Source of the DNA: Dimorphilus gyrociliatus
Taxonomy: Eukaryota; Animalia; Annelida
Length of the DNA: 64,000 bases
Reading direction: 5' to 3'
Assembly: GCA_904063045.1 (NCBI GenBank)
Contig: CAJFCJ010000026.1
Location: 288,964-352,963 of the forward strand
Shown: positions 32,001-62,626 of the stretch, piece after piece
Layout of the letters: each line of letters begins with the position of its first letter
Position numbering within the stretch: position 1 is the stretch's first letter
Notes under the pieces: model-generated
Seen by the model: only the letters and a program-made list of their open reading frames with translations
Databases searched by the model: none
Told to the model about the DNA's origin: nothing
Made by a program: the position numbers and the translations under genes

Positions 32001-32639
32001 ACCAGACAACTAATATTTGTCCAACGGAACACGCACAATGGTTCATACCAGTTTTATTAGCATTCTACACTTTATTTACAAATGTTTTAATATTAAATTT
32101 GATAATTGCTATGTTCAGGTCTGTTATTTACAAAGAAATAGATGTTTTCTCCTTACTATTTTCTTTACAGTTATACCTTTCAAGAAATTCATGAAAATAC
32201 TGACAATGTTTGGAGATACCAAAGGTACATGCTAATAAGAGAATTTTATGATCGACCTCGTCTACCGCCACCGCTGATTTTTATAAGTCACTTATGGTCT
32301 TTATTTTTAAAAATATCCGCATGTTCTTCAAAATCAAGAAAAACAATTGGATCAATTTTCAGTATGCTTAAATATATGATATACATAGGTTTTTATATTT
32401 CTTTATAAATAGGAATTAAATTTTTGAAGCCAAAGGAAGAAGAACTTGTTAAATGGGAAAAGATAAGAGTGGACCATTACATGTCCATTTTGGAAAATAA
32501 AGAGAAAGACATAATTTTAGAAAAACTTCATCATCTCGAAAAAATGACTGAAAGATTGAGTTTGTCAATCAATAATACAAAAAAACTTAAAAGAAGATAT
32601 AGCCGAAATATACAAAAAAACAATACGACAGTGTGCTAA
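29039..32639 (+). CDS. TRPM: TRPM-family cation channel (TRPM2/4/8-like), no C-terminal NUDT9-H or kinase domain
   Basis: MHR motifs LIISVTGGAK, WIITGGTNSGVMKLVGEAV, LDVNHTHFFLVD, VVLEGGRGT. S2 CEEIRQ; S3 WNILD; S4-S5 LGPKLIMI; pore YGEFFLDE; S6 LNLIIAMF; TRP box WRYQR. A coiled coil then a stop. Confidence 0.95.
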
Positions 32640-39160: not shown

Positions 39161-39175
39161 AAAGGGAAGTTAGAG

Positions 39176-41057: not shown

Positions 41058-41621
41058 TTTGTTACGTGTTTTTTCAGGATGTTGGAATCGACTTAAAAAT
41101 GCTTTTTTTAAGGGACGGGAACTGTTTTAGACTACATTTCTTACTGTCTTTTGCTTTAAAGGATAGATATTAGAAACTTTTCACTATTTTTCATGTAATT
41201 ATCTGTTTTTCATCAATATTCCTGATCCCTGGTGATTAATAATATCAGCCAAATCTTTTTAATATTCAAAATGGTGGGTAATTTCATAAATATTCATGAG
41301 TCACATTTGTGAAATATTGACAAACATCAATTGTTACAAGTCAATGAAGTCTATCACAAATTTTCATGCATTAAAAGTTTTTTACACCAGCTTGAGATAT
41401 CTGAATAGGTATTCTCGATGTTTCCAAAAATTCTTTGACTGTCATTTCGGTAATTGTGGGAAGCCTGGATAAAGTCTCAAAAAAAGACTATTACTAAAAT
41501 TAATAGAGAAATGAACAGGATGAAGCAGAGAGGAGAGAGGGTAACATTCACAAAAACACAAGCAAGCATTTGCCAAATGATTATTCCAATTGAATAATTG
41601 TTCCAATTGAATATGAGAGGG

Positions 41622-44600
41622 TTAGGTCTGTAGGATGAAATCGTCTATATGTAGATTTGACTTGCACTTGTCCCTATACCATTTAGTCCTTTTAGGCAGA
41701 TCGTTATGTAATTTTGTACAACTTTTTAAGTGTAATTGTTGACGTTCCTTTGTAATCACTGCTGGGTTGTATTCACCGTCTTTAATTTGTAATTTGTTTA
41801 ATTTGATGAAATTTTTGGGTGATACAACCATAGGGTCGGTTAAATCATCAACCCCAAAGCTTACGTGGCGATGATTCATTTGGTTTTCAATTGGCGAAAC
41901 AGTTTCCCATATCAGTTGTTCGTTTTTCTTTAACTCCGAGATAAGAATCATTTCTTTTATTAGCCCTATTAGGTTTTCAATAATTCGCATTTTGTGGGTG
42001 GAGAAGGCGGCGTTAAATTTCAAATCTAAATATTTCACATTAGATTTTTGAAGGTCCAAGCCGAGTCAGAGATGATCGACTATGGCCAGTTCCATCTGTT
42101 CATAAACAGTTGAAACTCAATCATTAAAGCTTAAACTGTCAACGAAGTTATAGGTGCTATTTGTACCGCACGGTGTCTCAGATATGAAATTATTAGCAAG
42201 TAGACTTTGTCCCCATTCATGGTTCAGCAGATGGATCCTGTGAAATCTATCGCACAGTTCTGAAAAGGGTTAATGAATTCACCAATGCGTGATTCGGGTA
42301 GGTTCACCATCCTTAGGACCTTTCTTTTGTGATTTTTCACGATGAGAAATTTTCATCTCTTTAAAACATATTTTTATTTCCGTTGGAACATAGAGCAGGT
42401 GTTGGTTCTGCTATAATTTCTTTCAAATGGCTCTGATAGTAGCATTATTCATGTTGTAATGGATGTAGTTGATGAATTTTGTGATAATAGGGTGGTGAGC
42501 ATTAACTATGATCTTCTTCATTTTTCGTGATTCATATGACCTTTATTGCTGCTGTCAATTCTGATCGAGGAGAGAAGAAAACACGGGAAGAACATGCCAA
42601 AAGGAAGCCTTGACTGTCTTTCACTGCATAAACATTGGCGCCATATGCTATTTGGGAGGCATCGGCATAGATATGAATTGCATCGACGTGTGGAATCTTC
42701 CTCGAGATTTTGTAGATTCCACAAATTTCCTTCAGTATTTTAGTGATATTGGTTTCGTTTTTACTTGTTTCATCCCATGTGAGACCGTGGAACTCAGAGA
42801 TGAGAACCTTAGCTTGTAGCTTTATAGGTTCGATGAATCCCATAATATCATATACTCGGGCTAAGTTAGAGTAGGAATGTCATTTTGTGATGGGCGTTCG
42901 ACATCTCAATCATACAAATTAACTTTAATTTCGTCGCGATCAGGAATGTATAGCTTAATAAGGGAGTCAATATACTTTATTTTTAAAGAGGAATGGGTGC
43001 TGATCCAGTTGCTATTTGTTGCGCATTTTATGAATGATGGGGAGTCATAAGAGAGCGGACAAAATATTGCCCTCCTTTTGAGGGTCTTCGTATAGAAATC
43101 CAAAATAGGGTGAATGTGTTTTGTCAACGCCCCTATTCATGAATATATGCTTTATGTCAGCAAATATGAAATATGATTGAGTTCGCCATAACGTAAGGAG
43201 GTGGACTTGATTTGACAACCACGAGGATCTTGGATGAAGTATATCATTGAGGGGATAGCCTTTATAATTCGCTGCTCCATCAGAGACAATGCGGATTGAG
43301 CTTTGTTTTGTAATATGTTTGCATCATGTTTGAATGGTAATGGAATAGTCCAATAGTCATTTGTAGGCTGTACGTAATTCGCCATAATATCAGTTGCAGG
43401 AATATCATTGATTGAACAAGATGGATCTGTATCAAGATTGTCTACATCGGGCAGTTGGATAACTGGATTGATGTAGTGAACATTTGGATTGGTCTCTAAT
43501 TAGTAGTTTCATCATATGACGAGGTGGTTTGAAACCATGCAAGAACATATAAAATGTAAGTGTAATTTTTAGTGATATACCATTTGAGGGGTCCGAGATG
43601 AGCATGTGTACAATCCTGGTATAAACTTTGTCTGATGAATAAATCAACTCGATCAATGGATAGTGGTGGCTCGATATAATGCGAATTATATATTTTGGCA
43701 TCAGTGATAGCGATCCTACAACGTGTGCATCAACATCATATTCCCTCCTCCAATGAGGGACTATAGTTCCAACTTTCTCTGTTGTCATCGTTTGAAAGTC
43801 ATGTCATTGTTGACGTATATGTCAATACGCCACTTATACTGACTGACTCATTGTGTAGGATATGGTCTCCAGAAATTGTCTACAAATCAGAGAGATAGCT
43901 GCCCCAGTATTGATGAGAGGAGCTATAATCCTATGATTTTCTGAATTGCCAGACGCGGGAACCTTGACTGTTGCAGCATAGACTGGCATTCTCTCTCTGA
44001 TACTCTCCGATTGGTTAAAGTTCACTGCAGAAGTCGATTTACGTGTTGTTGTCCGCTTCTGAAATAAAGGTGTGTGATACTTTGGATTGCATTTCTTGCA
44101 GTTAAATTTTGATTGACAATTTTTTTACTTGTATATCCGCCACATAGACAATTGGAACAATGATTAAGAAGTTGAATCAATCTCTGTCTTCCCTTAGGCT
44201 CCGAGTTTATATATGTTGGGCAATATGCCAGATACAAGTCTGATTTTCTGTCCATAAACAGTTGGAGTTTTTGCTGGTTGTGACTTTAGTTCTACCCTCC
44301 GAGTTCGGATAGGGATTTTTATCGGTTGTTATGTATTAATGTTTGGGTGGCCTTTGATTTATGAGGTCATAAGAGAGTTTGGTCATGTTGGATGCTAGAT
44401 AAGTTCCTTTTTCGACGGCTTATTAAAATTATTAATTATTCTTGAAATAGATTGACCTAATTCAGATACAATTGAGTCAAAGTTATCAGGATATTTGAAG
44501 ATAAAAGAAGAGACTGAACTTTGAATGTCTGGTAGCATTTTTCTGTATAACGTTCAAGTTTTTCGAATTGCTAACGTCTTTTATAATTTGGTAATTGTAA

Positions 44601-45160
44601 AAACGAAAAAGAGTGTTTTAAACTCAACCCAATCGCAACATTATTAGGTTGGAATTAGGTTGAGGATTCGTTGCAATGTGTTTCCTCCATGTAATGAAGT
44701 GTCACCAAAGATGAAATCTAAGGTGTGTTAATAAGGCTTAGGAATTTCTTCATAATCACCTTTATTATTGCTCACGATATTCACAACAGTCGGCTTCGAT
44801 TTAGAATCTTCGTTGATTCTCCCGCCATTTGTATATGACGTTCCGTTACATTCTGGTCGAAGTTCCACCATCTTGTTCTTCGACCGTTGGAGAATGTTCT
44901 ATCTCTTGCGTTTGAAAATGGACAGGTGACTTACATGATTCCTTGGTAGAATTTATTTAGTTAGAACCAATCACTTGAATGATACGTTCCATCTGTTTTT
45001 CCAGAGAATCTTTCTTCGAATCTACTTCTTTGCTCCTTCAGTTTCTCATCAAGTGTTGGTGAATCGACCATGTTGGTCAGTTGAGTTGTGGTTTCCAAAT
45101 GGTTTAGTTTGAGTTTGTCTCTACCTCAGCATGTTCAATTTTACTAATATCTTATATTAT
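41622..45160 (-). mobile_element. BEL/Pao internal region, copy A (gag-PR-RT-RH-IN), decayed and 3'-truncated
   Basis: gag knuckle YCPTY...CSNCLCGGY (44022-44255); protease LINTGAAISLI; RT pieces; RNase H IHIYADASQIAYGA; integrase tail (41622-42059). Many stops and frameshifts. Confidence 0.9.
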
Positions 45161-46592
45161 TGTTGTCACACAAACTGGCGACTTTATGATTAAGATATAT
45201 AATTTATATACAATAATCGTAATAATCGTAGTAATCGAAAGTAGCTGTGATATGAATGAATAAGGTAGAACGAGTGATATTTGTGTCTTAACTAAGGTTT
45301 TTTTAAAGTATTAACGTAGCGTTTGTAAAATGATCACATAACGTATAGATATAAATTTATATGAAAACAGTGGAAATTCATTACTATTTCATTACGAGAC
45401 AATGAAAATTTTTTATTCCAACTGCTCTGCCGAAAAGAGACCAATGAAGCTTTTTCATCTCTTCCTTTCTCTTTCTGTTAAATTGTTCTACAATTTTTTC
45501 AATTCTCTTCCGTAATTCCTCCTTATTTGTAATATGAAAATCTGTCGTGCGTAGCATCTTTCAACATATGCCAAACATTTTCAATAGGTGACAGGTGAAG
45601 AGAATATGGTGGCCAGGGCAAAATCTTGAAGTTTTCAACTTGGAAAAAGTTTTTCACCGTCTTTGCCTTGCTGCAAAATAAATCCTTGTGGCATTTTCTT
45701 ACAGAAGAAGGGTAAGGCCTCCTTTTTCAACAAATTCAGGTACCATATCTTGTTACATTTTTTTTTGTATGCGTGAGATACACAAGATCCCATCTGGAAC
45801 TAATGCCCTTCACACCACTAACCCACCTCCCAGCATTGGAGTTTTGATCCTTAGGCTTTCCCTCTCTGTATTAAAGCTCCAGATTTGAAAATTATCGGGC
45901 CGTTTGAGAGAAAACCTACATTCATCCAATATTATAGCGGTTTTCCAGTTGGCATTTTCTCTTATCCAATTGGAGCAAATGTTAACCCTCTTTTCCCTAA
46001 TCTACCTGATGATAGAGGGTGTTGTTGAATTTTTGATACTTGGTACCCATTCTTTTTATCGTTCTTTGCAGTGTCCTTTTAGAAATATTTATTTGGCATA
46101 TGCTGTAAAGGTTACAGGGCTCCCATAAGTGCCAACCTTTTTATAGATTGGTTTTGCAATGTATTACACCATCAAATTCTTTAGATTTAGAAATTCAGTG
46201 ATCTCTTTGTAGGTTCTCCCACCCTACCACCTTCTCCATCACAATTTTGTGAATTTCTTTGGAATGCGTATTTTTTTTCAAGTTACAAACTACAGTGTTT
46301 TCATACAATATATAGAATGTCAGCAAGAAAAAGTCAATTAATCTTAAACTCTTTTTTCAACAAATTTTTCATTGTCTCATAATGAAACTGTAATGAATTT
46401 CCAATATTTTGATATATAAAACATTGATTTTGATTAGTTAACGGGGTAAAATTTGTAAAAAATATACCGCACGAAAAATGTTGTCTTTGCTGTATATACT
46501 GTATATGTTGAGGAAGTTACGATCGAAGATACTATAAATTTAAATATAGGGACGTAACGTCCTTAATGGTAACGATATGATCACCGACTACA
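45161..46592 (-). mobile_element. BEL LTR shared by copies A and B, split by a Tc1 insertion
   Basis: Left terminus TGTTGTC at 45161, right terminus GACTACA at 46592. The segment gtagaacg..tgatattt.tgtcttaac matches the intact LTR at 57379-57601. Confidence 0.75.
45366..46505 (-). mobile_element. Decayed Tc1/mariner transposon
   Basis: Minus strand reads NWKTAIILDECRFSL, LGGGLVV, FILQQ and ILPWPPYSLHLSPIENVW. The right end falls at ...ACTG|TA (about 46501). The left end is approximate. Confidence 0.8.
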
Positions 46593-48480
46593 CTGGCCGA
46601 GGAGAGAAACCCTAACCCCATCTCTTGCGCCTCTCTCGATTTTGTTGTGCCCAGTATGTATTTCGAAGATACGGTCTGTAATTTTACGGGTCATATATCC
46701 CAACTTGAAGATATACCTGAACCGTTGGTCAAGGTATAGAACGAGGTCGTCGGATTGTAGGTTCAGCTTGCATATGTCTTTATACCATTTGGTCCTCTTG
46801 TGCAAGTTGTTGAATAGTTCCGTGCAATATTTTGCGTTCAGGAGCTGAAATTCTTTGGTGATAACAGCAGGGTCATAATCGCCGTCTTTTATTGCCAGTT
46901 TATTCAGTTTTATGAAATCTATGGGCGATACCGTCATCGGTTCCCCTAAATCGTCGATCGCGAGACTTATTGGATGACGGTTCATTAGATCCTCGATTGC
47001 CAAATGATGAGGCGAATGGTATCCTATTCGAGACGCTTATTTTTCTTTATTTTACTGGTGAGCATCATCCCCTTTATTAGGCCGATTATTATTTCAACGA
47101 CTCCCACTTTGTGTGTGGAGTAAGGGAAATTGAACTTTCAGTGAAGATGTCTCAGCCAAGTCGGAGATAACTGATTTTTGCCAGTTCCATCTCTCCACAA
47201 ATAATTGGAATTGGATTATCAGTGTTTGACTCAGGTAGATTCGCCATTTTTAAAACGGTCCTTTATGATTCTTTGCTATGCATAGTGTGCATCTCATTGG
47301 GACACTTTTTATTCCTGTCGTAGCATGGAAGAGGTGTAGGTATTCAGATAATTTCGTCCAGATAGCCTTAAGTGACGTGTGGTTCATTTCATGATGTACG
47401 TGGTAGATTAATTTATTAAGGATAGGATGATGGGCGTCGACTATGATCTTTATTTGTTGTGAGTCGTTCGATCTTCCTCCTCAAGCAGTGAGTAAGACTT
47501 TGATGGCCTTGTCAGTGGCATGGTGGTTTGGACGAGTTTGAACAGGTGCCCTTTCGTTGTGCCCTTTCAAGTTTCCAGATCCCTATTTCGTTGTCCGTGA
47601 CTCTATCATCTGGTGATGACCGGACGTTGGATTTGAATTTCAGGATCCAGGCCATTACGTGCCGCATTTTTGGCCATTCTCCTTTTATCTCGAAAGAAAA
47701 ATCAATAGCTATCATGCTAATTGTAATGTTGGGTGTATCTATTTCTATTAATGCTTCCCATTTCTCCTTTATTTTTCTTTTTGCTTTAGTTAGGTAATCG
47801 GCAGGGTTGTCTTCTGAATTTATAAGGCACCAATTGGTCTTTTGCTTTTGTTCTTAATATTGATTTCATGGCGTGGCGTATGTGATTTGCCAGTTTTAAA
47901 TCACCGATTTCTAAGGAGCTAAAAAGTTTCTTGCTTTTGACGAAAACTTGGGATGTCTGGGAAAATGGTACTATATGGACATGATAAAATTCGTGACTCC
48001 TATAGCTGTCGTCAATTCTGCTTGTGGGATTGATGCCCTGGGCGAGGGAAAGAGTCGAGAAGATGTCAGCAAGTAGCCTTTACCTTCGCTAACCACATAT
48101 ACAGCTGCGCCATAGGCCATGTCCGATGCATCGGCATAAATATGGATTGCATCAGGAGATGAAATCTGTCTTGTAATTAAATAAGAACCAGATATATCTT
48201 TTGAAATCTTATTGATGTGGGTTTCGTTTTTACATGTAGCATCCCAATTTAGGTCGTGGAATTCAGAGATAAGGATTTTGGCTTGTAGTTTTACAGGTTC
48301 AATGAATCCCACGATATCATATATTCGGGCGATGCATGAATAGAACTGACGTTTAGTGATAAGACGTTCAAAGTCTCGACTATGTATGTTGACTTTGATT
48401 TCATCTTGATCCGGAATGTACGTTTAATATCTGGGCTATTTTTAGACAAGTTTTCTAGCCATTTCATCTCTTTCCTTACA
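46593..48480 (-). mobile_element. BEL/Pao copy B (RT end, RNase H, integrase)
   Basis: GFIEPVKLQAK...IHIYADASDMAYGA (47971-48312); integrase tail ORF 46581-47003 ending at the LTR. Confidence 0.9.
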
Positions 48481-48489
48481 TATGTCATA

Positions 48490-49250
48490 GTTTTTTTTAC
48501 TGTATCCCTCTTTATAGTTGGGTACAACATTTTCTGAAAGTTTACCTATAAATTATACCCATCAGCATTCGTCCAAAGTGGGAATTGGCAGAGTCCTCTC
48601 TGTTATATTATATAAATCCAACTACCATTATGTTTCCAACCATCAAACTTTACTGTTTTAGTTGTATATTTTGGATCATTTCTTGTACCGACTGGCCTCT
48701 TAACGTATTCCCTACGACGACGATGGAGTTCGATTTTGCTCTCATCACTGAATATCACTTTTCTCCAGCTATTTGAGCTCCATTTAAGATTTTGCTTAAT
48801 TTGCTTCCCATTTAGAGCTGGCTTCTTTTTGCAACAGTCCTTCCATTTAATTTGCACTTGCAAACAATTTTTTTTCACGCTAGATAGTAATATTTAAATT
48901 AGGAACTGCAGAATTTTCTAGAACTCCCCTAGAAGCGGTCCATTCTGGGTTTGATCTGCACGTTTTTGTAAGTTGTAGCTCCATCCTCATCGTTATTTTG
49001 CGTGGTCTACCAGACCAATGTAGGTCTTTTATCGTTCCAAATTCTTTAAATTTTTTGCACCATAGCGATCGAATTTTGTTGCAATACCTCGAATGGTCAT
49101 TTTTGGCATGCTCAAATGATGCATGCTCTAAAGATAGGCGACGTATTTTTTAATATTTCCAAAATAAATGGTATGTTCTAAATTCTTTGAAGAACAAGAG
49201 AACAATATTTGTAGGCCATTTTTTTTCAATGACACTACTCATAATTATGA
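48490..49250 (-). mobile_element. Tc1/mariner remnant (N-terminal half)
   Basis: SGRPRKIT linker, WRKVIFSDESKIEL (first catalytic D) and KTVKF. Confidence 0.8.
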
Positions 49251-49349
49251 GGTAGTAGTGACGGTATTATAATTACTTCATAGCAATCTAAATTCATAGT
49301 ATTGTAAAAAAGAGTAAAAAACTGATTTTGGACAGTTTTATGATATAAT

Positions 49350-50850
49350 CTAGGAGTGTTGGGATCATTGGCTCTTCCAGGTCGTCGATTACAAAGTTTA
49401 TCGGGCGATCATTCATCTGTTTTTCGATGGAGAATATTGTTAGACGTATATTTTCCCAATGATGAAGCGTGTTTCTTTTTTAACTTCGATGTAGAAAACA
49501 TCATTTTAATTAGTCTTATAAGTCTTTCTAAAATTCCCATTTTGTGGGAAGAGTACGGTGAGCTTCCATATCAGATGTTTTACACTGGGTTACTCCTGAT
49601 AGCGTTTTTCTATTGTTCGTTGTAATTTTCGGAAGGTCGGGGCAGAGTCAGATCCAAATGACCCCGGCATTCCCCACCTATTCGTAAATAGTTGGAATTC
49701 TACCGTCAGGAGTCCGATAATAGAGATTTTATGGACGATATCTGCACAGCGCATGAGCGGAGGCATGTGATGACAAGAAGATATACAGTACTTTCTCGTG
49801 GTGTATAGTCCTACATATAGGTCCGGTTAGATCTACCGCACAATCTTGGAACGGACTGGTGAATCCCTCTGTTCGAGAGTTCGGTAAATTCGCCATTCGT
49901 ATGGTCGCTTTCTTATCATTGTTTGCTAGATAGATTTTGCATCTTTTGACAACTTTCTTTACGCCTATTGTAGGATATATAGGGTGTACGCATTCAGCTA
50001 GTTTCATCCAAGTTTCTTTGAGAAACGTATGACTGTATCCTTAATGGATGTGGCTTATGAGCTTTATGATGATGGGGTGACGGGTATCCACAATAGCTTT
50101 CTTTGTCTCTCTTAACTTGTCGGACCTTCCTAATGTGATATAGGTATTATCGTCCTCTTTCATCAGCAAATATGGTTTTACTAGTTTTTGTATTGGCATT
50201 TGTATTGGCACCTTGTACGATTTTGATTAAATGCCGCTGGTATGAGTCTAATTCAGCCGTCGATATGTTTGGGTGTTTTAAGAAGTTGACAGCTGATGAA
50301 GCTTCTGGACATTATACGGCGCATCTTTGGCCAGTATCCTGGAATACTGAATAAGAAATCTGCTACCACTAGATTTACGGTAACGTTGGTTTCACTCGAT
50401 TCTATCTGATTCCTTTTGAATAAAGGCCATTTCTCCCTCATTCTTTTTCTAGTTTTCGTCAAATAATCTGCAGGATTATCCGATGATTGAATATATTGTC
50501 AACATTCTTTTCTCAGTTGCTATTAATGTTTTGACTGCGGATGAGACAGTCTTTGACAGTTTCAAGTCTCCATTTTCTAGATAGCATAGAACTATCTTAC
50601 TGTCTGCGAAAACTTTGATCGGGGATTGTAGGAACACATTCTTATAGGGCTTAATAAAATTAGATGCCCGTACTGCTGCCGTCAATTCTGCCCTAGGAAT
50701 TGATGCTCTCGGCTAGAAGTGACGAGAGGACGAAGAAAGGAGATAACCCTGATGCCCATGTATTACATATACAGCAGCACCATATGCTACATCCTAAAGC
50801 GTCAGCATATATATGTGTTGTCGACGTAGTGAAATTCTAGGCCAAGGTAG
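49350..50850 (-). mobile_element. BEL/Pao copy C (RNase H end and integrase)
   Basis: ELTAAVRA...VFADSKIVL; integrase zinc-finger region VVKRCKIYLANN...ANLPNSR...PFQDCAVDLTGP; GILERLIRLIK...MNDRPI. Confidence 0.85.
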
Positions 50851-51000
50851 TTTTGTACTCGACAATAATTACCGCTATAACTATTATTAATAATAACGTC
50901 CTTTTCTACTTTACTGGGACCTGAATATATTTCATATGTTCGACTAGAAATTTGTTTGGTTATATAATCCAATGAAAATTTTTGAGTAGTATTAGAGTAT

Positions 51001-51018
51001 TAACCTAACACTAACCCT
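51001..51018 (+). repeat. Degenerate telomere-type tract at the truncated 3' end of BEL copy D
   Basis: taacctaacactaaccct directly abuts the point where integrase-tail homology stops. Confidence 0.55.
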
Positions 51019-51019
51019 G

Positions 51020-54000
51020 TCTTTGCGTAGTTGAGTCTTACAGCTTGCAATTAGTCTATTACGCTCCTCAGATATTGTTGCTGAGTCATAATTGTCGTCT
51101 TTAAATTGGAACCTTTGATAGTTTTATAAAACAGAAAGTGTTACTGTCATCCGTTTACCTAGTAGTTCATCGATCGAAAAACTAATCGATTGATTATTCA
51201 TCTGATTCTCGATTGCAGATATCGTGAGGCATATTTCTGACCAAGTTGATAGTTGATTCTTTTAAAATCCGAAGTGGTAAGTAGTTTCTTTATAAGGCCT
51301 ATGAGTCTTTCTATTCTACTACTCCCATTATATGTGAATAATATAACATTAATTTATGGAGCGATATAATTTCGTAAACGTTGGAGCGGAATCTGATATG
51401 ATTGATTCTGGACATTCCCATTTATTCAGAAATAGTTGTATGTCAATCATCAGTGAACTTGATGATAGGGAATTTGTAGCTAATAGCTTTAGTTTTGGGA
51501 ATCTTTCCAGCGTAATACTGTCCACGACGAAAATATCCATATAACCTTAACTAATTAGTTTGTCTTTATTTTTTTTTTCAAATTTATATTTTTTATGTTA
51601 GTTAAAGAGTTACTTTTCAATCCTGTTCCCTTTGTTGACAATAACCTGACAAACTCTCTTCCCCATTCCTTCATACAAGTGCTTTACAAAATCTCTATCA
51701 AATTTATTAATTTTTTCAACTTTCTCTTGAATCTTATCCCATAAATGATTGAGGGTTTGAGGTTTCTCTATTTCATAAATTTTTTGTTTCAAATAACTCC
51801 ACAAATTCTCTATGGGATTGAGGTCAGGAGAGTATGGAGGCCAATCAAGGACTTGGATCCTATTCTCCTCCAGCACATCTAGTGTTACACTGCCAGTGTG
51901 TGGGGGTGCATTGTCCTGCCGCCAGATGAAGTTTTCACCAAATTTTTCCCTCAATACAGGAAACATTGTTCCCAGTATGAATTCGAAGTATATTTCTCCA
52001 GTTATGTTAGAGGGAAGTCTTTGGATGAAAACTTCACCATTAGAGGATATACACCCCCACACCATCACTCCTCCTCCACCAATAGGAAGCTTATCCCTGG
52101 ATAGTCTTGGTCGATCATCTAACTGCCACATTTACATGTGATCCGGTCCACCTAGGGAGAATCTTGACTCATTTTTACTCACTTTTGATGATCTTCACCT
52201 CCTATCAGGTTGTCCCTCCCTTTTATTCTCACAAATATACTGCAATGAAGACTTAAGGATATTCAAATCCCTTTCTAATTTTTCATAGGTCATCTGGCTT
52301 TTTTTCCATCTTACCAGCTGTCTTACTTGCCTGTCGTATTTCATAATGACTAATAAGTTGAAACAATTGTCTGCTAAAACTAAATTGTTCGAAATTCGAA
52401 TGTTCTATAAATTATTTAGACCAAAAATATGTTTGTATGGATATTTATAGCGCACGAACATCCACGAGAGAAACGGCGAGAATATGAAGAGAGAAGATAG
52501 CCATTATCATTATGAATAAGGTATACTACGGCACCATAGACAACGTCAGATGTATTAGCGTAGATATAAATGAGATCAGGGTGGGGTACTTGTCGAGGGA
52601 GGGTATAGATATCTGAAGTTTGTTCAATGATATTCTGTAGAATCAGTAATTTCAGTATCCCAAGATAAACCATGGAATTAGGAAATTAGTAGTTTAAGTT
52701 GGAGTTTACTAGGTTCGATAAAAACCAAGTATATTTCATTTATTGCTGGCAAAAAATAATAGAAATGACGTTTCGTAATTGAGCGGTCAGATGGCCAGGC
52801 ACCAAGACCAAGTACTTTCATGCGAAATTCAAAATGTTTAATTTGAAGTGAAGAGTGAGAGCTGATCCATGGACTGTTAGTAGTGTATTTGGGAAGAGGA
52901 AGGTCCTTCGATAAAAGTTCGTGGTGTAAGCGAAAAGCTAAGTTTTCCAATTCTTACTCATAGTCAGTCACCTACTAGAATTTAAGTCATCCATGTAAAA
53001 AGATTTCAATATAATGTACTTTTCGGTATCTGATAGTGATTTAGCTTGAAGGATTGTAGAATTTTAAGCGGTACAGGCGATAAAAGGAGAACTAGTAGCT
53101 CCAAAAATATGTCTAGTCATAACAGCAGAAAGTATATGATCTTTCCTTAGAGGATCTTTGTAAAAGAAACCAAAATAAGCTTGATGAGATATCTGTATCC
53201 TAATAAAATTCATGAACATAGACTTTATAGCGGCTAATATAAAAAATGATTGGGTACGCCATAAAGTGGGAAGTTGTAGTTGATTTGACAATAGTGATGG
53301 TCCAGGTAAAAGGATGTCGTTTAGAGAGTAGCCTTGATATCTAGCAGCTCCGTCAAATACAATTCGGATAGTTTCTTTTTCAGGACTCTTTACGCCATGA
53401 TGAAGTAGATAAAATTTTACTTCGTGAAGTGGAACAGGGCGAGCATAGCCTTTGTCAAATAGAATTTGGATACCTTGTTTATATTCATCATTATAGATTT
53501 GTTGACGACGAATCGATTGAAACTGACCCTTTGCCATAGATTTGTTATTTGTAAAACGGAAGGATCATGTTTGAATGGTAGAGGAAAGGTCCAGTAATTG
53601 TCAGACGGTAGAGAGTAACTGGCTAGGATATTAAGAGCGCGAATATCGTTAAGAGAATGATGAGGTTCAGAATCAAAATCGTCGACATCGGCAAGTTGAA
53701 TGATAGGATTCAAATGATGAACATTCGGATTTGTCTCAACGTATGAGATATAATTAGCCATATGAGTCTCTTCCGCATTTGGAGAAAAAGGAGTTCTATG
53801 TTCTATACCAACCAAGAGGATATTTTATATAAGTGAAATGATCACGTCGAAAGGTGTATAGAGGTCCATGATGAATTGTACATCTACCAATTAGTAGATC
53901 AAGTTCACCGGGAGATAGCTCTTTTTCTGAGAAGTTAGAGTCGATGTATGTGTCCATATCATCTATTAGATGATTGTTTCTTAGTAGTAGGTACACTATG

Positions 54001-54850
54001 GACCACATAAGCGTAGATATCATGGTATTGATCGAGATGAGGGAATATGATCTTGACTTGTTCCTTGGCAATTGATTGAAATGGGTTCTTTGTATATGAG
54101 ATGTCCATACGGCATTGTTCAGTGGATTAGGTTACAGATGGGTAGATTTAAAACATAAGGAATTTTTTGAATTCGACAAGATCGGCTACGGCATTAGGTT
54201 GAAAGAGTTTTTCTTATTAAGAAATCGGTCTAAAGTGTTTCCCTCCTGGTATTAAGGTATTACCATAGGCAAAATTTAAGATTTGTAAAAGATTGGTGAA
54301 ATTGTCCTTGTGTTTACTCAAATCATAATACTCTTGGCAATCGTCATCATCTGCTAGCCAACGTTTTAAGATTTGAAATTTTTCAATATCTTCTAATTCG
54401 GCTTCCAACAATGGGTCAATAAAGTTTATGCTAAAATTCTGGTAATTGGCACTTTTTTCATTTTTCAGACGAGTCAATCTTTTCGTTCCTTAGAATATCA
54501 ATTCTAGAATTCGGATTCGAAATGTATAGTGTTGCGTCATTTTCTCTGTTTTTAAATGTTCGAAATTTTTTGATATTAGAAGTTCCGTTATCTTGTTCTT
54601 CAATCGTTGTAATATGTTCCAAGTCTTGTCTTCGAGTGTGAATGGGAGACTTATATGATTCTTTAATCGTACCTGATTGAATGGATCCTATCATTTGTAT
54701 GAGGCGTTCCATTTGTGTCATCTCTGATTTCATAGCGTTGATCTCCGCTCTATTTTGGGCGTTAGATTCCTCAATTTTTCCAGTTTTTCATCTAATGCTG
54801 ATGAATCAACCATATTGGACTGTTGAAATGTTTCCAAATGGCCTAAACGG
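51020..54850 (-). mobile_element. BEL/Pao copy D (gag-PR-RT-RH-IN), interrupted by a Tc1 element
   Basis: gag pieces 54217-54733; RT IRIVFDGAARYQGYSLNDILLPGPSLL, RHIFGATSSPF and FYMDD (about 52990); RNase H 52416-52673; integrase CPESIISDSAPTF (51349-51540). Confidence 0.9.
51570..52410 (-). mobile_element. Tc1 (DD34E) transposon remnant with an open C-terminal catalytic ORF (51610-52131)
   Basis: GGGGVMVWGCIS, WRQDNAPPH, 34 residues, then DWPPYSPDLNPIENLW. The N-terminal part is decayed. Confidence 0.9.
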
Positions 54851-54859
54851 CTGGTGCAT

Positions 54860-56080
54860 TTAGCAATCGTTTGACTTTGATGGTATACTTGGGGAGGGGT
54901 AGGTTCTTGGCGGCAAGTTCATGATCTAGATGGTAGGCGAGATTCTCCAAGTCCTGTTTATTATTGCTTAAGAGAATGAGGTCATCCATATAAAAGGATT
55001 TCGATATTAGTTCTTTCTTTAGCATTGTCAGTGTTGTAGCTTTGTTGATGATCGAATGTAGGCTGTACAAGCGATGAAAGGTGAGCTTGTAGCTCCAAAT
55101 ATATGGCAGGTCATGACTGCCGAAAGAATGTGGCCTGTTTTTGTAGGGTCCTCGTAGAGAAATCCAAAATAAGATTTATGAGGGGTATGAACTCGGATGT
55201 TCATACGCATCGACTTGATGTTGGCTAGTATAGAAAATAGTTGCGTGCGCCATAATGTAAGAAGTTGCAGTTGGTTAGGCAGCAGTGAAGAGCTTGGTAG
55301 AAGGATATCGTTTAAGGAACGTCCATTGAACTTTGTGGCGCCATCGAAAACAATCCTAATAGTTTCTTTCTCTGGGATCTTGACACAGTGGTGGGTAAGG
55401 TAAAACTTAACTTCATCGTGGGGTACAGGACAGGCATAGTCTTTATCGAAGAGTGTTTGTATACCTCTGATGTATTCGCCGTTCTATTTTTTGTAGGTGA
55501 ATAGATTGGAATCGTCCTCTAGCCATTGATTTGTTATTTTGTAATTTCGGTGGATTGCATATCATAGATGGATATCCTGTCATTGTCATAATCGGAGTGA
55601 TTTATAATAACAGGAAGGGTCGCTTTAGGAGATGTTGGTGGAGAGATGTATGGTGAAGTTGGTTGCATCATTAACAACGGGACTTAGAAGGACAGTTGTC
55701 ATTGGTATGGCCGCTTCGTAAACAATCAGAGCACAGGTGAAGAATATGAACTAGTCTTTTCTTATCGTCTAGGTTTGCGTTGGAATATGAAGGACAGTAG
55801 GCCAGGCATAGATGATTTTCGGGGCATAGGCATCGTGAACTTGTAATTGCATTTGTTGATAAATTTGTCGTAGTCTATTACGGGGGGAACGTAGGATCCA
55901 TTTTGGATAATATTTGTAACGTTCGTGATTGTTTTATCCAGTTCTTGTACGAGTGAATTGAAGTCAAAGGAATGGTTAAAAACGATATGTCTGACTTTCT
56001 GCTGGATGGGTATTGGTAATTTAGGGATAAATTGATTAAGTTTAGGGTGTTGCCTTTATTTTCTAGTCGATTCAAAGATA
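54860..56080 (-). mobile_element. BEL/Pao segment E2 (gag knuckles joined to RT, protease missing)
   Basis: LCLAYCPSY...CSDCLRSGHTNDNCPSKSRC..C..LHHTSLH (about 55620-55820); HIFGATSSPFIAC; SFYMDDLIL. Confidence 0.85.
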
Positions 56081-56099
56081 TAAGAAGAATGTTGAATGG

Positions 56100-57378
56100 G
56101 TTGAAAGGTTGCGTTTTTATTAAGAATTCTTTCTATCGACGTTTCGTTGACTACACCACTATTCGTAGCGTATTTTGTTACAGTTAGGCCTTCTTTATGT
56201 AGACGATACTCCAGGTTTTCTAGTTCCTGCTCATTATCGCCTGGGAAAGCTCAGTATTCTTTAGTTGGCTATACGTTGATATTTTATCAATGATTTCTTA
56301 TGCAAAGTCGAAGTCTTTTTTTTAAACTTTTGTATAAGTTTTTTATATACCTATTAGGTATTTTTTGAAATTCGTCCTCCCATTGCTCTCCATAAATCAT
56401 GTTTATTATTTATATTGTGTTTTGGCATACAGTTTCCTCGGTATGCCATAAATTTTCTATCATGTTGGGCTCAGGGCGGTCGGCTGCCCAATCTTTTAGT
56501 ACTTTTATTTTTTCTTTTCTTAAAAATTCCAATGTGGAGGCTGAAGTATGGCACTTTGCCCCATTCTGCATTAATCTTTCATCTTTATGGTAAATGGGTG
56601 ATAAATACTGACTTAAAATTTCTTGATGTTTCAAACTGTATACCCATCGTACAAGGCTATTGCACTGTCTCCTTTAGACTTTATACAGCTTTCGTCTGAA
56701 AAATTACGTTGTTGATGTCTTTCTCGTCCTCCTCCATCAACTGCGTCGCTTGTTTTAAGACCCGGTTTCCCTATGGCAATATAGCCTCGATATTGATATC
56801 TTATTACAAAATCCAGATTCCTGAAGTACATTTCTTGCAGTAAGGAAAGGGTTTTCTCCCGGCAATGTTACAAGGATGCGTAATGAGCTTGCTTGCATTT
56901 CTTACATTTGAATTTTGATGGGCAATTTTCTCTCATTTGTCCATCCTGTAGACAATTCGGGCAACGATTGAGAATTGGGACAATCTTTGTCTTCCCTTAA
57001 GATCGGAATTATATATAGGTCGGACAACAGGTCAGACACAAGTGATTTTCCGTACATAAACACCTGGAATTCTTGTTAAATGATGAAATTTGTCTGTCTT
57101 TAATCTAAAGTTTTTTTGAACTCAATCCAATTGAAAGGGGATTGTCTCTTTGAGAATTTGAATGATGCGGGCTCCATTTGTGTCGTCATTCTATTCTCCA
57201 TCGCGTTGATCTCTGCTCTATTCTGAGCGTTTGATTCCGAAAATCTTTCTTTGAATCCTTTTCTTTACTCCTCCAATTTTTCATCCAGTTTCTCATCAAT
57301 TGTGCTTCCCAAATGGTTTGGAAAGTTGGTGTATCTGTCTCTTTCTTGGTATTTCAATTTTATTATACTCTAAGTTAT
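56100..57378 (-). mobile_element. BEL/Pao segment E1 (gag start, knuckles, RT piece) with a nested Tc1
   Basis: gag start next to the LTR; RCPNCLQDGQMRENCPSKFKCKKCKQAHYASL (about 56875-56970); RT piece QELENLEYRL...VTKYATNS (about 56150-56250). Confidence 0.8.
56340..56865 (-). mobile_element. Tc1/mariner remnant
   Basis: NPFLTA, NFSDESCI, MQNGAKCHTS and IKVLKDWAADRPEPNMIENLWH. Confidence 0.8.
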
Positions 57379-57601
57379 TGTTGTCGTTGAGTGAGTTACG
57401 ATCGTAGGTGACCGCTATTTACCGAATTTTACTAATATAGCACGTAGAAGGTAGATGTGGGGTTAGGGCGAAGAACGTAGAACGCATGATATTTATGTCT
57501 TAACAAGGATTTTAAAAGTTAAAACGTAACGTAGTTTAAGTTAATAATGATAGGCGTAATGTAAAATCGTTTAGGACTAGTCGCTATGACCACCGACTAC
57601 A
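57379..57601 (-). mobile_element. Complete 223-bp BEL LTR shared by tandem copies F and E1
   Basis: Termini TGTTGTC...GACTACA (6/7 inverted match). The integrase tail abuts the right end and the gag start abuts the left end. Confidence 0.85.
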
Positions 57602-60600
57602 CTGGCCGAGGAAAGGGGAACGGAAAGGAGCTCATTCGATAGGTAAGGGATTGTCTCTTGCGTCTCTCGATTTTGCTGTACCCTGTATTTCAGTGATTTG
57701 ACGAGTATTGTGTCCTAGTTTAAAGTTATATATAGATCATTGATCAAAGTATAGTATGATATCGTCTGCTTGTAGTTCTAGCTTGAACTTGTCTTTAGTC
57801 CTTTTACATAGGTCGTTAAAGAGTTCCGTGATACATTTCGAGTTTAATAGTTGACGTTCTTTTGTAATCACTACTGCCGGGTTGTATGCGCCATCTTTAA
57901 TCGGTAATTTGTTTAGTTTGATAAAGACTATGGATGGTACAGTCATTAGATCGGATCACCTAGTTCGTTGATCGAGAAACTTATGGGGCGTGGTTCATTT
58001 GGTTTTCGATTGCCGAAACAGTGAGTCTAATAGTGTCCCAGTTAAATTGTTTTTTTTTCTTTCTGAGCTAATGGTCATTCTTTTAATCAGTCCAATCAGT
58101 CGTTATGGGGTGAATAGACTGAGCTGAATTTCCAGATCAGGTACTTTACGTTCGATTGTTTTCTATAGTTCCATTTATCTATGAATAGTTGAAACCCAAC
58201 CATCAAAGTCACTGGGGACGGTGAGGTTGTAGGTATCATTTGTAAAGAACGGAAATGCAAAACAGATAATCACAAGGGTATAAAGTCATGGTCATAAAAA
58301 CCCGGACACTGTGAATTTTGATAGGCAAAACCTAATCCTTTTTTTATTTTTTCAGTGTTTATTATTAGGTTATTTTTATATGCGACCGCCCCCTTTTTCG
58401 ATACATTTACTAATTCTTTAGCCTATCCCATAATTCATTATATAAATTTGGTAACAACTCTGGATTCTTCTTGATAATCTCATAACTAACAGGATTTTTG
58501 AATTTTTTCCCACAATTTATCCTCAGACTCGAACTGTTGCCCATCATAAACCATTGTTTTTGTAAGGTGTCACATATTCTCAATTGGGCTCAGATCAGGG
58601 CTCTTTGCTGGCATATCAATTGGCTTGATATCATTATTTGCAAAGGCATCTTCCACAATAAAGCAGCTATAATTTTCTGCATTTAATTTTGTCCTTATCC
58701 TTTTTTGCCCAATCTACTATTATCTCAAAGGTAAAGTCGACAGTTATCACGTTAATCATAGTATTAGGTGTGTCATACTCAATATATATTTCTATAAATG
58801 CTTCCTATTTCTCCTGCATCTTTCTTCTCACCTTTGTCAGGTAATCGGCAGGGTTGTCCTCCAATCTAATGAAGCACCAACTGGCTTCCGATTTAGTTTT
58901 TAACTATTGATTTCACTGTATGACGTATATATTTAAATCTCCGTTTTCAAAGTAACTATGTACTACTTGACTGTCAATGAAAACTTTAATCTGAGTGTCT
59001 AGAAAGACGGTTTTATAAGACTTGATAAAATTAGCGGCTCTTATAGCTGCCATCAATTCTGCTTCAGGGATTGGTGTGGTGTCCTGGGCGATGAAAAAAG
59101 GCGAGAAGATGTCAGCACATTGTCTTTATTGCCGTTGACCGCATATACTGTTGTGCCATAAACTATGTGGGAAGCATCGACATAAATGTGGATTACATCA
59201 GGAGATGAGGTCTGTCTTGTAATTGAGTTCCTACCCCGCCGATTTCCTGACAAAGGTGAGAAGAAAGATGAAGGAAAAATGGGAATCACTGGAAATCTCT
59301 TTTATTACCTTATTAATGTAGGTTCCATTGTTGCTTGTTTTGTCCAAACTTTGGCCGTAGAACTCAGAGATGAGGACTTTGGCTTGTAGTTTTACGGGTT
59401 CAATGAATCCCATAATATCATACATTTGAGCGATATATGAGTAAAAATGACGTTTCGTGATTGGACTTTTGATATCTCGGTTATATAGATTAACTTCAAT
59501 TTCATCTTGACGCGGAATAAAGATTAGTCCTAATACATTAATAGGGTTTTCGAAATGCTTGATATTTAGGGAAAAATGCGCACTGATTCATGTACTGTTC
59601 GTAACGTATTTTGCTAGAAGTAGGTCTTTGGCTGCCAGTTCTTGGTGTAACTGGTATGCTAGGTTTTCTAATTTGTCTTCGACATCGCCGACCAAAATAA
59701 GATCATCCATGTAAAAGGACCTTGACATTATTTTCTTCTCTTGGGTAGTTAAGAAGCTTGATTTATTGTGTTATTTAGAGCACTGCATGCAAAAGATAGA
59801 ATATTACCCTCACTTTGGGGATCTTTGTAAAGGAACCCAAAGTAGGGTTGATGTGTTAGTTGCTCCATGGTGAGGCAAATGGAATTTGACTTCTTCATGT
59901 GGTACCGGGAGTACGTAAGAGTTATTGAACAAGGACTAGATGCCTTTTTTATATTCGTTGTCATCAACAGATTTGCGGTGGACGGCTAAAAATCTCTCTC
60001 TCGCCATAAAACGATTGTTTTGTAACACGTTCGCATCATGTTTGAATGGTAATGAAATGGTCAAATAGTCATAATATCAACTGCATGCGAGTCGTTAATA
60101 GAACGGGGAGAATCTATATCAAGTTCATCCATGTCTGATAATTCAATTGGCTTGGTCCACGAGATGAACATTTGGATTGTTTTTGGTGTAGACTGTGTTG
60201 ACCATATTGGTACAATTAGTAGTCTCATTATGAGGTGAGGTGGTTCGGAACCAACCAAGGGCGTTATCTAACGTAAGTGTATTGTTTTGTCAAATACAAT
60301 CGTTTTGGGGAGGTCCAAGATGCGTATGTGTACCATGCTGACGGGAACTTTGTCCAATGAGCAAGTCTACTCTGCCATTGGGAAGAGCTGGTTCAGTATA
60401 ATGTTTGTTGACGTATACTGACGGTTAGTTTGGCATGGGTGATAATGAATCCACTACATGAGCGTTGACATCTTATTTCTTTCCTAGATGAGGGAATATG
60501 ATTCTGACTTGTTTCGTTGTTATTGCTTGGAAGTCGTTATTGATATATATGTCAATGTGACTTCATTTATTCAGGCTCGTTATATTTTCAGGAATTGTCT

Positions 60601-60844
60601 ACTGATGAGAGAGACAGCTGCCCCTGTATCAATGACCAATTATTATTAACCAATGGATTTTTTAATTATCGGCACTGTTACATCATACACAGGGTCTTTC
60701 TTCAAATTTCTAATCCTTTGCTCCTCAGTTTCCCATCAAGTGTTGTCGGCCATATTGGTCAGTTGAGTAATAGCCTCCAATTGGCAACTGCTTGAGTTTG
60801 TCACTTCCTCGGCATATTCAATTCTTACTATTACCTTAAATTAA
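57602..60844 (-). mobile_element. BEL/Pao copy F (short gag, PR, RT, RH, IN) with a nested Tc1
   Basis: Protease LVIDTGAAVSLIS (about 60600-60640); RT FYMDDLIL (about 59700); RNase H IHIYVDASHIVYG; integrase tail 57737-57946. Confidence 0.9.
58283..58730 (-). mobile_element. Tc1 remnant retaining one TIR
   Basis: TA then AAGTCATGGTCATAAAAACCCGGACACTGTGAATTTTGATAGGC, similar to the TIR at 61902. Minus strand reads PAKSPDLSPIEN. Confidence 0.8.
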
Positions 60845-60947
60845 TGTTGTCGTTGAATAGTTATAGCTGTGATTATCGTTATTAGCCGACTTTATTAATA
60901 TAACACGTAGAAGTCGTCAAGCTCAGTCGTTGTGACCACCAGCTACA
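60845..60947 (-). mobile_element. Shortened outermost 5' LTR of the BEL array
   Basis: TGTTGTC at 60845, a shared core (taatat..cacgtagaag) and a ...GACCACCAGCTACA terminus. No element sequence to its right. Confidence 0.75.
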
Positions 60948-61901: not shown

Positions 61902-62626
61902 AAGTAATGGACTAAAAAATCCGGACACCGTAAATTTTGATAGGCCAATTTTGAAAACACCCCAAAAATGTTATCTTTGTTTTAAATTTGTTTTTTTTGT
62001 CTAAATTTACATAAAAAGAGTTATATTTACGTAATACTGAAAAATATTAGAGAAAATCATCATATTTATGAATATTATTACAAAAATAATAATATTATGG
62101 AGTAATGGTTTGGGGACTAATAACCTCAGATGGGGTGTTTGAGGTTTGGAGGGTAAGCAAAAAAATTAAATGCTCAAACATATTCTTGTTTTGTTGTTGA
62201 AGATGTTTTCCCTGTAATTGACGAAATCTCAGATAAAATGGGGAGAAATTACATCTTCCAACAAGACAATGCTGGCTGCCACACAGCAAGAGTTACCAAA
62301 TCTGTATGTTTGGATGGGAGCTAGAGTAAGTGCATCGAAAAAGAGGGTCGTCAAATTCAAAGTTAATAAAAGTATTGGTCCCCAAACCCTTGTCTCACGG
62401 CCGAATAAGAAAAAAACACATAAAAAAGCATACAATATAAAAACAAAAAAAATGATGTAAAAAGTTATCTAAATACTATTTGATAGAAATTTATATGTAG
62501 AACCGAGTTTCACCTAATAATTAATAGCTACAATATTAAAAAAACAATCTTTTTTGATAAAGAAAAAGATTTTTAATGTTCGGCCTATCAAAATTTACTA
62601 TGTCCGGATTTTTTAGTCCCTTACTT
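61902..62626 (+). mobile_element. Internally deleted Tc1 element with both 45-bp TIRs and a TA target duplication
   Basis: Left AAGTAATGGACTAAAAAATCCGGACACCGTAAATTTTGATAGGCC; right GGCCTATCAAAATTTACTATGTCCGGATTTTTTAGTCCCTTACTT; TA on both sides. Inside: GVMVWGLIT and IFQQDNAGCHTA. Confidence 0.9.

Follow-up and report, generated by a model that had tools for sequence, protein, structure and literature searches.

Strand-uniform BEL/Pao and Tc1 remnants in the genome of Dimorphilus gyrociliatus: a decayed transposon island or a piRNA source?

Introduction

Does a stretch of DNA in which every recognised transposon remnant lies on one strand represent a piRNA source comparable to Drosophila flamenco, or an ordinary island of old, decayed elements? 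The question is raised by a block of ~19 kb (41.6–60.7 kb) within a 64,000-nucleotide stretch of the D. gyrociliatus contig CAJFCJ010000026.1 (positions 288,964–352,963; hereafter the window, the contig being C26), which a preliminary description had put forward as a candidate flamenco-like cluster. We favour the second answer with a probability of roughly 0.55: the block would be an ordinary old and eroded transposable element (TE) island, in which the strand of the BEL/Pao copies was inherited and that of the Tc1 elements arose by chance, and whose arrangement does not imply a function.

Results

The block is composed of BEL/Pao and Tc1 remnants on the minus strand

Using tblastn with BEL/Pao gag and pol open reading frames (ORFs) and 21 intact Tc1 transposases, all from the same genome, we recognised twelve BEL/Pao and Tc1 pieces in window 41.6–60.7 kb, and all twelve lie on the minus strand. 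The preliminary description had counted about seven BEL/Pao and five Tc1 remnants, all minus, and tblastn agrees with it for every match. Coding remnants of the two kinds of element make up 76% of the block, with unassigned gaps of 0.1–1.1 kb between them. The features of the block and its edges are as follows (window coordinates, strand, description, method).

38198–39213, plus: BEL/Pao pol remnant, colinear, internally deleted (tblastn to the L011 pol ORF)
39214–41621, no strand: spacer between the plus-strand remnant and the minus-strand block, free of TE protein matches (similarity and repeat scans)
41631–44231, minus: BEL/Pao copy G, gag 86–272 and pol 83–889, many stops (tblastn)
45358–46416, minus: Tc1 T1, transposase aa 37–349, L031-like family, both 55-nt terminal inverted repeats (tblastn and repeats)
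46620–48423, minus: BEL/Pao copy F, pol 273–928 (tblastn)
48424–49327, minus: Tc1 T2, aa 21–273, L014-like family, filling the E/F junction exactly (tblastn)
49324–50793, minus: BEL/Pao copy E, pol 373–836 (tblastn)
50895–54114, minus: BEL/Pao copy D, gag 217–267, pol 30–399 and pol 727–926, T3 inside (tblastn)
51514–52455, minus: Tc1 T3, aa 6–72 and 156–345, L012-like family (tblastn)
54885–55838, minus: BEL/Pao copy C, gag 75–141 and pol 46–245 (tblastn)
55882–57155, minus: BEL/Pao copy B, gag 47–147 and weak pol 218–361, T4 inside (tblastn)
56290–56880, minus: Tc1 T4, aa 72–129 and 203–356, L015/L016/L027-like family (tblastn)
57586–60636, minus: BEL/Pao copy A, gag 189–291, pol 35–530 and 719–951, T5 inside (tblastn)
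58357–58704, minus: Tc1 T5, aa 209–345, L022/L023/L030-like family, at the pol 530/719 gap in copy A (tblastn)
62099–62312, plus: Tc1 fragment, aa 186–260, 78% identical in protein to the L025 family, 1.2 kb past the block (tblastn)

The seven BEL segments (A–G) are arranged head to tail as consecutive gag-pol units, with 40–770 bp between successive copies. The Tc1 pieces are located at discontinuities in the BEL sequence: T5 splits the pol of A (530/719) and T3 that of D (399/727), T4 separates gag from pol in B, and T2 and T1 lie at the E/F and F/G junctions, respectively. The BEL/Pao identity is indicated by Peptidase_A17 (Pao aspartic protease) matches on the minus strand at window 42616–42888 and 47974–48357, and by colinear tblastn matches to the gag and pol of L011, an intact relative, with E-values down to 1e-109. 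With regard to Tc1/mariner, T3 matches DDE_3 (E = 4e-14) and all five remnants match intact Tc1 transposases. No host gene was seen in the block, as had been described before, and a Pfam scan of its plus-strand ORFs yielded no match. An Rfam scan of window 36–64 kb and a Pfam scan of ORFs from the 10 kb beyond the window end were likewise empty.

The remnants are old and the Tc1 insertions are independent

The BEL copies are full of stops and share 65–78% DNA identity with each other and 65–72% with L011. The earlier account had offered local tandem duplication as an alternative origin of the strand bias; a recent event of this kind is excluded by the 65–78% identity of the BEL copies and by the absence of shared DNA similarity among the Tc1 pieces. 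The five Tc1 remnants have ~30% mutual protein identity, and each is nearest to a different Tc1 family. As they derive from five families they represent independent insertions, which bears out the claim that they are dissimilar and independent. The same diversity rules out repeated copying of a composite BEL and Tc1 unit. A T2-like Tc1 nested in BEL at C26:686 kb also argues against such copying, since its identity to T2 (72%) does not exceed that of dispersed copies (71–77%).

The terminal inverted repeats of T1 lie 949 nt apart. The youngest piece of the block is T3, which at the DNA level is 79% identical to an active family. Except for short 89–92% matches between T3 and one other Tc1 locus, on contig C148, the content of the block is at most ~80% identical to active families.

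The BEL/Pao strand is consistent with an inherited array

Copies E and F have relatives in a second island on the same contig. Copy F is 80% identical in DNA to C26:636146–636495 and copy E 67–83% identical to C26:635190–635963, so that both are nearer to the copies at C26:635.2–636.5 kb (67–83%) than to their neighbours in the block (65–72%). Judged from coordinate tables only, these relatives have the same order and relative orientation and are free of T2. A second, inverted island thus appears to share the E/F junction, which suggests that an existing array was copied. Elsewhere, islands of the same BEL family each occupy one strand as well: C26:624–637 kb is all plus, and C26:685–689 kb, C26:614–616 kb and C13:547–553 kb are minus. 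The BEL copies are not countable as independent strand events.

LTR retrotransposon tandem or head-to-tail arrays form by unequal recombination or segmental duplication. We infer that an ancient BEL/Pao family formed a head-to-tail array in a gene-poor part of the contig, and that at least part of this array subsequently gave rise, as one unit, to a copy in another island. Insertion of five Tc1 elements, each from a different family, into or between the BEL copies would have followed, and deletions would afterwards have trimmed all of the elements. The common strand of the BEL copies would be inherited array structure. For the five Tc1 elements, chance is the simplest explanation of the shared strand, the case having come to notice because many windows were scanned.

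The short head-to-tail spacing of the gag-pol units and the several one-strand islands of the family could also reflect self-nesting of BEL/Pao in a fixed orientation, or unequal LTR recombination, with coincidental agreement of the Tc1 elements. We regard this as quite unlikely: LTR pairs and target-site duplications are not definable, even the flank repeats of L011 are only 62–75% identical, and identity within the block is lower than to copies in other islands. Moreover, adjacent copies of another BEL family (L010) can be opposite, and the Tc1 strand is left unexplained.

The one-strand pattern breaks at both edges of the block

A plus-strand BEL remnant at 38198–39213 lies 2.4 kb upstream of the block. 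Its five pol pieces are in order with respect to L011 (44–116, 398–430, about 700–751, 753–894 and 913–942), and this colinearity rules out the match being a compositional artefact. TE orientation flips across the spacer, from BEL on the plus strand at 38.2–39.2 kb to the minus-strand block. Degenerate telomere-type hexamers were observed within this remnant, at 38548, where one of its deletions is joined, and at 39176, close to its 3' end; the spacer itself contains two short tandem repeats as well as three short (TAACCC)n runs (39790, 40172 and 40795).

On the other side, beyond the plus-strand Tc1 fragment 1.2 kb past the block, a younger Gypsy-like fragment lies on the plus strand ~5 kb beyond the window end (L032:4610–5625); this is the nearest young retroelement fragment to the block. 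The one-strand pattern is broken at both edges, and the limits of the block were chosen post hoc. Further downstream, ~10–20 kb past the window end, the minus strand carries BEL remnants from other families, together with two additional Tc1 remnants at ~17.5 and ~27 kb past it, giving seven minus-strand Tc1 elements versus one plus over ~50 kb. The possibility that the plus-strand fragment at 62.1 kb and the minus-strand element ~27 kb past the window end are one Tc1 split by inversion was rejected, because the downstream element retains both N- and C-terminal parts.

Upstream, the recognisable host genes of window 1–38 kb (multi-Tudor, STAND NTPase/LRR and TRPM) are all on the plus strand, as are nearly all ORFs of at least 75 aa at 32–41 kb. 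This arrangement would suit a block situated within a long plus-strand host transcription unit or immediately beyond its end (for instance TRPM read-through, or a long intron or lncRNA missing from the annotation), with selection having removed insertions whose own signals run in the direction of that transcript. Such filtering is very unlikely in our judgement, given that the TRPM ion-transport domain stops at 32.2 kb, that the plus-strand BEL remnant stands between the gene and the block, that no plus-strand coding exon was found at 39–74 kb (the rest of the window and 10 kb beyond), and that introns are short in D. gyrociliatus (PMC7854359).

The strand statistic is weak

The preliminary description held that DNA transposons insert in either orientation, and elsewhere in the genome the strand of Tc1 elements relative to the nearest reverse transcriptase or BEL match within 15 kb accords with this premise (10 same, 9 opposite, or ~50:50), in a tally made by hand from top-scoring matches only and including some small contigs assigned either to a microsporidian or to palindromic amplicons. 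Tc1 neighbours within 30 kb of each other were on the same strand in 9 cases and on opposite strands in 25. The agreement of all five Tc1 elements with the BEL strand has a nominal p of 0.5^5 = 0.03. This earlier figure is uncorrected for the many windows that were read, and the edges of the block were set after the fact; the statistic is weak and post hoc. In the wider region there are ~11–12 independent minus-strand events versus 2 plus (two-sided p ~0.02), and since the preference for the minus strand extends past the window end, chance is not a comfortable explanation.

Evidence bearing on a piRNA source

The strand uniformity of five independent Tc1 families together with the BEL array, and the flip in TE orientation across the 39.2–41.6 kb spacer, would also be expected of a uni-strand piRNA source, in which a plus-strand precursor starting in the spacer is antisense to all of the remnants and is processed to piRNAs, antisense insertions being kept by selection. 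The genome contains three Piwi-domain loci (on contigs C10, C19 and C20). Only that on C10 has an Argonaute Mid domain, and by exclusion those on C19 and C20 are, from their domain content, putatively PIWI-like. D. gyrociliatus has negligible 5mC and lacks DNMT3 (PMC11292947) as well as a SUV39 orthologue (PMC12153100), such that another route of TE control is to be expected. In addition, 173 of 619 25-mers in T3 match an active Tc1 family with at most 3 mismatches. AATAAA is scarce on the plus strand (10 versus 34), although base composition alone predicts this ratio, and poly(A)-signal depletion as a sign of a precursor was therefore discarded.

Several lines of evidence nevertheless make this reading doubtful. 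Remnants other than T3 have almost no near-matching 25-mers (0–29 per alignment, relative to the intact copies compared). The block lacks fragments of the abundant, recently active Gypsy type, the nearest of which is in the sense (plus) orientation. The TE islands published for the scaffold are closed in whole-animal ATAC-seq (PMC7854359), a large master cluster was not found in the annelid Capitella (PMC8915122), and the nominal p of 0.03 is uncorrected. Our literature search found no paper giving small RNAs for D. gyrociliatus. The sequence evidence, taken together, does not favour a flamenco-type locus.

A broader version, which we hold to be unlikely, is that of a unistrand piRNA source in a spiralian with a 78-Mb genome and neither DNA methylation nor SUV39. 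Plus-strand transcription, perhaps bidirectional, would start in the 39.2–41.6 kb spacer, antisense DNA transposons would be kept by selection, and the block would be one of several strand-uniform islands on the scaffold that jointly serve as TE memory. If one-strand piRNAs were produced, the locus would constitute a compact and tractable TE memory in an annelid that lost DNA methylation, and would extend antisense-biased clusters beyond insects.

Discussion

Like the flamenco-type loci (PMC10643416; FlaHMM, PMC11400887), the block contains nested TE remnants, nearly all on one strand, at a border between genes and repeats. Those loci span 180–1085 kb (PMC10643416), whereas the block, at 19 kb, is over ten times smaller, and even the loosely minus-biased domain around it reaches only ~50 kb, with interruptions, rather than hundreds of kilobases. 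Strand bias is strong within the block; plus-strand pieces interrupt the pattern at 38.2–39.2 kb, at 62.1 kb and ~5 kb beyond the window end. In flamenco-type loci the bias is confined to env-bearing Gypsy elements, which are enriched (PMC10643416), whereas the block holds BEL/Pao and Tc1 only: it has no env-bearing Gypsy material, and none of 150 scored RVT_1 matches was a Gypsy-type match on C26. Flamenco-type loci also contain recent insertions that match active elements, whereas the content of the block is all old (no more than ~79–80% identity) and falls short of the similarity to active elements expected of fragments that direct silencing. Finally, flamenco-type loci have a single promoter and a long precursor, and are defined by one-strand piRNAs of somatic follicle cells, with 1U bias and phasing and without ping-pong.

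The piRNA loci of Capitella teleta (PMC8915122), from the same phylum, are closer in scale: they measure 1–20 kb, comparable to the block, and some are unistrand. They were, however, delimited from small RNA reads, and no master locus antisense to TEs was found in Capitella (PMC8915122).

The block resembles LTR retrotransposon tandem arrays in its successive gag-pol units of one orientation, its short spacers and an apparent junction common to a second island. It differs from them in that its copies are ~30% diverged, its LTRs can no longer be recognised, and its strand is also that of five unrelated DNA transposons.

TE islands in gene-free, closed chromatin have been shown on Scaffold002 and Scaffold026 of D. 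gyrociliatus (PMC7854359, Extended Data Fig. 3b). Taking C26, from its number, to be Scaffold026, we consider the best reading to be that the block is an ordinary decayed island like those already described for this scaffold. The description of those islands does not give TE strand orientation, BEL/Pao arrays or small RNAs. The value of the block is mainly as a pointer to the recurrence of strand-uniform BEL/Pao islands on C26, and it has in common with the published islands the same genome, an old cluster of TEs without host genes, and a position adjoining a gene-dense stretch.

Element content and strand of the block

The window (G000:C26:288964-352963) lies on contig C26 (CAJFCJ010000026.1) of a 77.9-Mb assembly in 349 contigs; plain coordinates below are window positions. 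Its host genes, all on the plus strand, fall within 1-38 kb and encode a multi-Tudor protein, a STAND/NACHT-like P-loop NTPase with LRRs (20124-25868) and, after it, a TRPM channel with a SLOG domain (29382-32194; E = 2.5e-65). Between 42 and 60 kb, G+C content rises from ~0.30 to 0.36-0.38. Using the genome's own BEL/Pao and Tc1 proteins, obtained through assembly searches for Peptidase_A17 and DDE_3 (loci L001-L031), we mapped the pieces of the block (~41.6-60.9 kb) by tblastn against the window. All element comparisons were piecewise, with neither a consensus nor a repaired reading frame.

BEL/Pao and Tc1 remnants in the block, from tblastn
60636-57586, minus, BEL/Pao copy A: gag 189-291, pol 35-530 and 719-951
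57155-55882, minus, BEL/Pao copy B: gag 47-147, weak pol 218-361
55838-54885, minus, BEL/Pao copy C: gag 75-141, pol 46-245
54114-50895, minus, BEL/Pao copy D: gag 217-267, pol 30-399 and 727-926
50793-49324, minus, BEL/Pao copy E: pol 373-836
48423-46620, minus, BEL/Pao copy F: pol 273-928
44231-41631, minus, BEL/Pao copy G: gag 86-272, pol 83-889
45358-46416, minus, Tc1 remnant T1
48424-49327, minus, Tc1 remnant T2
51514-52455, minus, Tc1 remnant T3
56290-56880, minus, Tc1 remnant T4
58357-58704, minus, Tc1 remnant T5

The one-strand observation is real: every tblastn match is on the minus strand, as the preliminary description had claimed for its about seven BEL/Pao and five Tc1 pieces. Coding remnants make up 76% of the block, and neither a Pfam search of its plus-strand ORFs nor an Rfam search over 36-64 kb returned a match. 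The pol remnant of copy A also carries a 56-nt inverted duplication (58799-58854 and 59233-59288, 89% complementary, 378 nt apart).

We think it somewhat probable (roughly 0.55) that the block is an ordinary decayed transposable element (TE) island, of the kind already published for Scaffold026 (PMC7854359, Extended Data Fig. 3b), assumed from its number to be C26. The strand uniformity of the BEL copies would then be structural, and that of the Tc1 remnants within reach of chance.

Non-independence of the BEL copies

The BEL family of the block is concentrated on C26 and keeps to one strand per island. In another BEL family (L010) neighbours can be opposite.

Other islands of the BEL family
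C26:624-637 kb, plus
C26:614-616 kb, minus
C26:685-689 kb, minus
C13:547-553 kb, minus

In the first of these islands lie relatives of copy E (C26:635190-635963, 67-83% DNA identity) and copy F (C26:636146-636495, 80%), which adjoin as E and F do in the block, with order and relative orientation kept and T2 absent; judged from match coordinates, pol 927 meets pol 309 at C26:636144/636145. This arrangement suggests copying of part of a ready-made BEL array, in inverted orientation, between the block and the 624-637 kb island in one direction or the other, with T2 arriving later. The BEL copies are thus not independent of each other, in line with the preliminary description. Recent tandem duplication is excluded, since the BEL copies are mutually 65-78% identical in DNA and the Tc1 remnants share no DNA similarity; repeated copying of a BEL+Tc1 unit is excluded by the Tc1 remnants being nearest to different families.

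Strand agreement of the Tc1 remnants

The five Tc1 remnants, of which T1 keeps both terminal inverted repeats, are mutually ~30% identical in protein and each has a different nearest family among those sampled; together with the lack of DNA similarity, this marks them as independent insertions, in agreement with the preliminary description. Their agreement with the BEL strand (5/5) has a nominal probability of 0.5^5 = 0.03, and over ~50 kb from the block start the count is 7 minus to 1 plus (0.035, one-sided, nominal), both before any correction for the genome's 1314 windows. The null of 0.5 per insertion used in the preliminary description held in a hand tally of strands among the top-scoring matches of assembly-wide tables, which covers best-scoring copies only. 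Outside the window, Tc1 elements and the nearest reverse transcriptase or BEL element within 15 kb were on the same strand in 10 cases and opposite in 9, and Tc1 neighbours within 30 kb were on the same strand in 9 and opposite in 25; elements therefore do not share strands as a rule, and a null of 0.5 is reasonable. Some of the tallied matches lie on small contigs attributed either to a microsporidian or to palindromic amplicons, and these may account for the surplus of opposite pairs.

Edges and downstream DNA

Plus-strand elements stand at both edges. A BEL/Pao pol remnant at 38198-39213 is taken as real because it aligns in five colinear pieces to the pol ORF of L011, an intact relative; a Tc1 fragment at 62099-62312 matches the L025 family at 78% protein identity over aa 186-260. 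The surroundings are thus mixed, and the block is the longest stretch of uniform strand that they yield.

We examined 60 kb past the window end as successive 10-kb pieces (L032-L037). In L032 there are young palindromic MITEs: a ~210-bp element, with 93-96% identity to the more than 40 copies in the assembly and an internal telomere-like (TAACCC)2-3 motif, occurs in opposite orientations at L032:765-973 and L032:6165-6373. Also in L032, a young 1-kb fragment (4610-5625) aligns with three Gypsy-like copies immediately 3' of their reverse transcriptase and has 87-96% identity to copies on C99, C118, C55 and C132; by this comparison its strand would be plus, the reverse of the block. L032:1-296 has a second copy ~21 kb further along C26 in the same orientation (C26:374048-374346, 296 bp, 97% identity), suggestive of local duplication within the TE-rich domain. 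Next come, at ~10-20 kb (L033), minus-strand BEL remnants from other families, and two Tc1 remnants at ~17.5 and 27 kb, both minus. The second (L034:6864-7654) is L025-like, the family of the plus piece at 62099-62312, and lacks ~aa 162-244, where a (TTAGGG)3.5 run stands; the plus piece overlaps this gap imperfectly. From ~41 kb onward come FLYWCH/MULE elements on both strands, with FLYWCH zinc-finger ORFs at L036:6503-9009 and L037:925-5390, one of them preceding an ORF that resembles MULE transposase weakly, below threshold; a protein kinase exon lies at L036:2464-2910.

Within the ~63 kb of TE-rich DNA that begins at 38.5 kb and reaches ~38 kb beyond the window, short telomere-type repeats, (TAACCC)/(TTAGGG) in 2-5 copies, occur at 25 sites; chance would give fewer than one. 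They include sites at 38548-40810, 46608 and 63656, the rest being in L032-L035; the gene-rich 1-38.5 kb and the DNA ~38-60 kb past the window end have none. A single palindromic MITE family accounts for eight sites; the remaining 17 are flanked by unrelated sequence, and in 13 of these plus is the C-rich strand. Several sites coincide exactly with an internal deletion junction in a TE remnant.

Telomere-type sites within TE remnants
38548, deletion junction of the plus BEL remnant
46608, 3' end of copy F
L033:1236, in a BEL reverse transcriptase
~27.1 kb past the window end, in the L034:6864-7654 Tc1, between aa 161 and 245

The repeats resemble scars left where telomerase filled repaired breaks, for which there is mammalian precedent, or relics of an old subtelomere.

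Age of the block and the case for a possible piRNA source

Its divergence makes the block a fossil. T3 comes nearest to an active family, at 79-80% DNA identity, with ~15 near-equal copies (77-80%); T2 reaches 71-77% to relatives and the BEL copies 65-80%. The maximum, 89-92%, is confined to three 220-320 bp stretches of T3 against one Tc1 locus on C148. In T3, 173 of 619 25-mers lie within three mismatches of the intact elements compared, and the longest exact match is 40 nt; all other alignments yielded 0-29 such 25-mers.

This decay, and the absence of any recognised Gypsy-like sequence inside the block (the nearest such fragment is on plus, opposite to it), weigh against the block as a candidate unistrand small-RNA source locus, which we consider unlikely. 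Speaking for such a locus, the assembly has three Piwi-domain genes; since the Argonaute Mid domain is also present in C10 only, the C19 and C20 genes are predicted, by exclusion, to be PIWI-like. Cytosine methylation is negligible and DNMT3 absent in D. gyrociliatus (PMC11292947), as is SUV39 (PMC12153100), and another route of TE control would be expected. The literature searched contained no report on small RNAs of this species. The 2.4-kb spacer between the plus BEL remnant and the block (39.2-41.6 kb) showed no promoter-like feature among those testable from sequence; it contains two short tandem repeats and three short telomere-type hexamer runs. AATAAA occurs 10 times on plus versus 34 on minus, as base composition alone predicts, so its plus-strand rarity is not special. 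The multi-Tudor gene (8579-12965, plus; several Tudor domains, best Pfam TUDOR E-value 2e-13) precedes the TE island by 30 kb; Tudor proteins often act in the piRNA pathway, and this proximity is probably coincidence.

On these sequence features, a flamenco-like interpretation is not favoured. The env-bearing, Gypsy-type 'Dingle' is the commonest TE class of the genome (PMC7854359). Capitella, the only annelid covered by small RNA data in the literature searched, has piRNA loci no larger than 10-20 kb and none identified as a master locus (PMC8915122). Flamenco-like clusters in Drosophila obtain their strand bias exclusively via Gypsy elements, unlike the block with none recognised, and span 227-1085 kb (PMC10643416), whereas the block spans ~19 kb.
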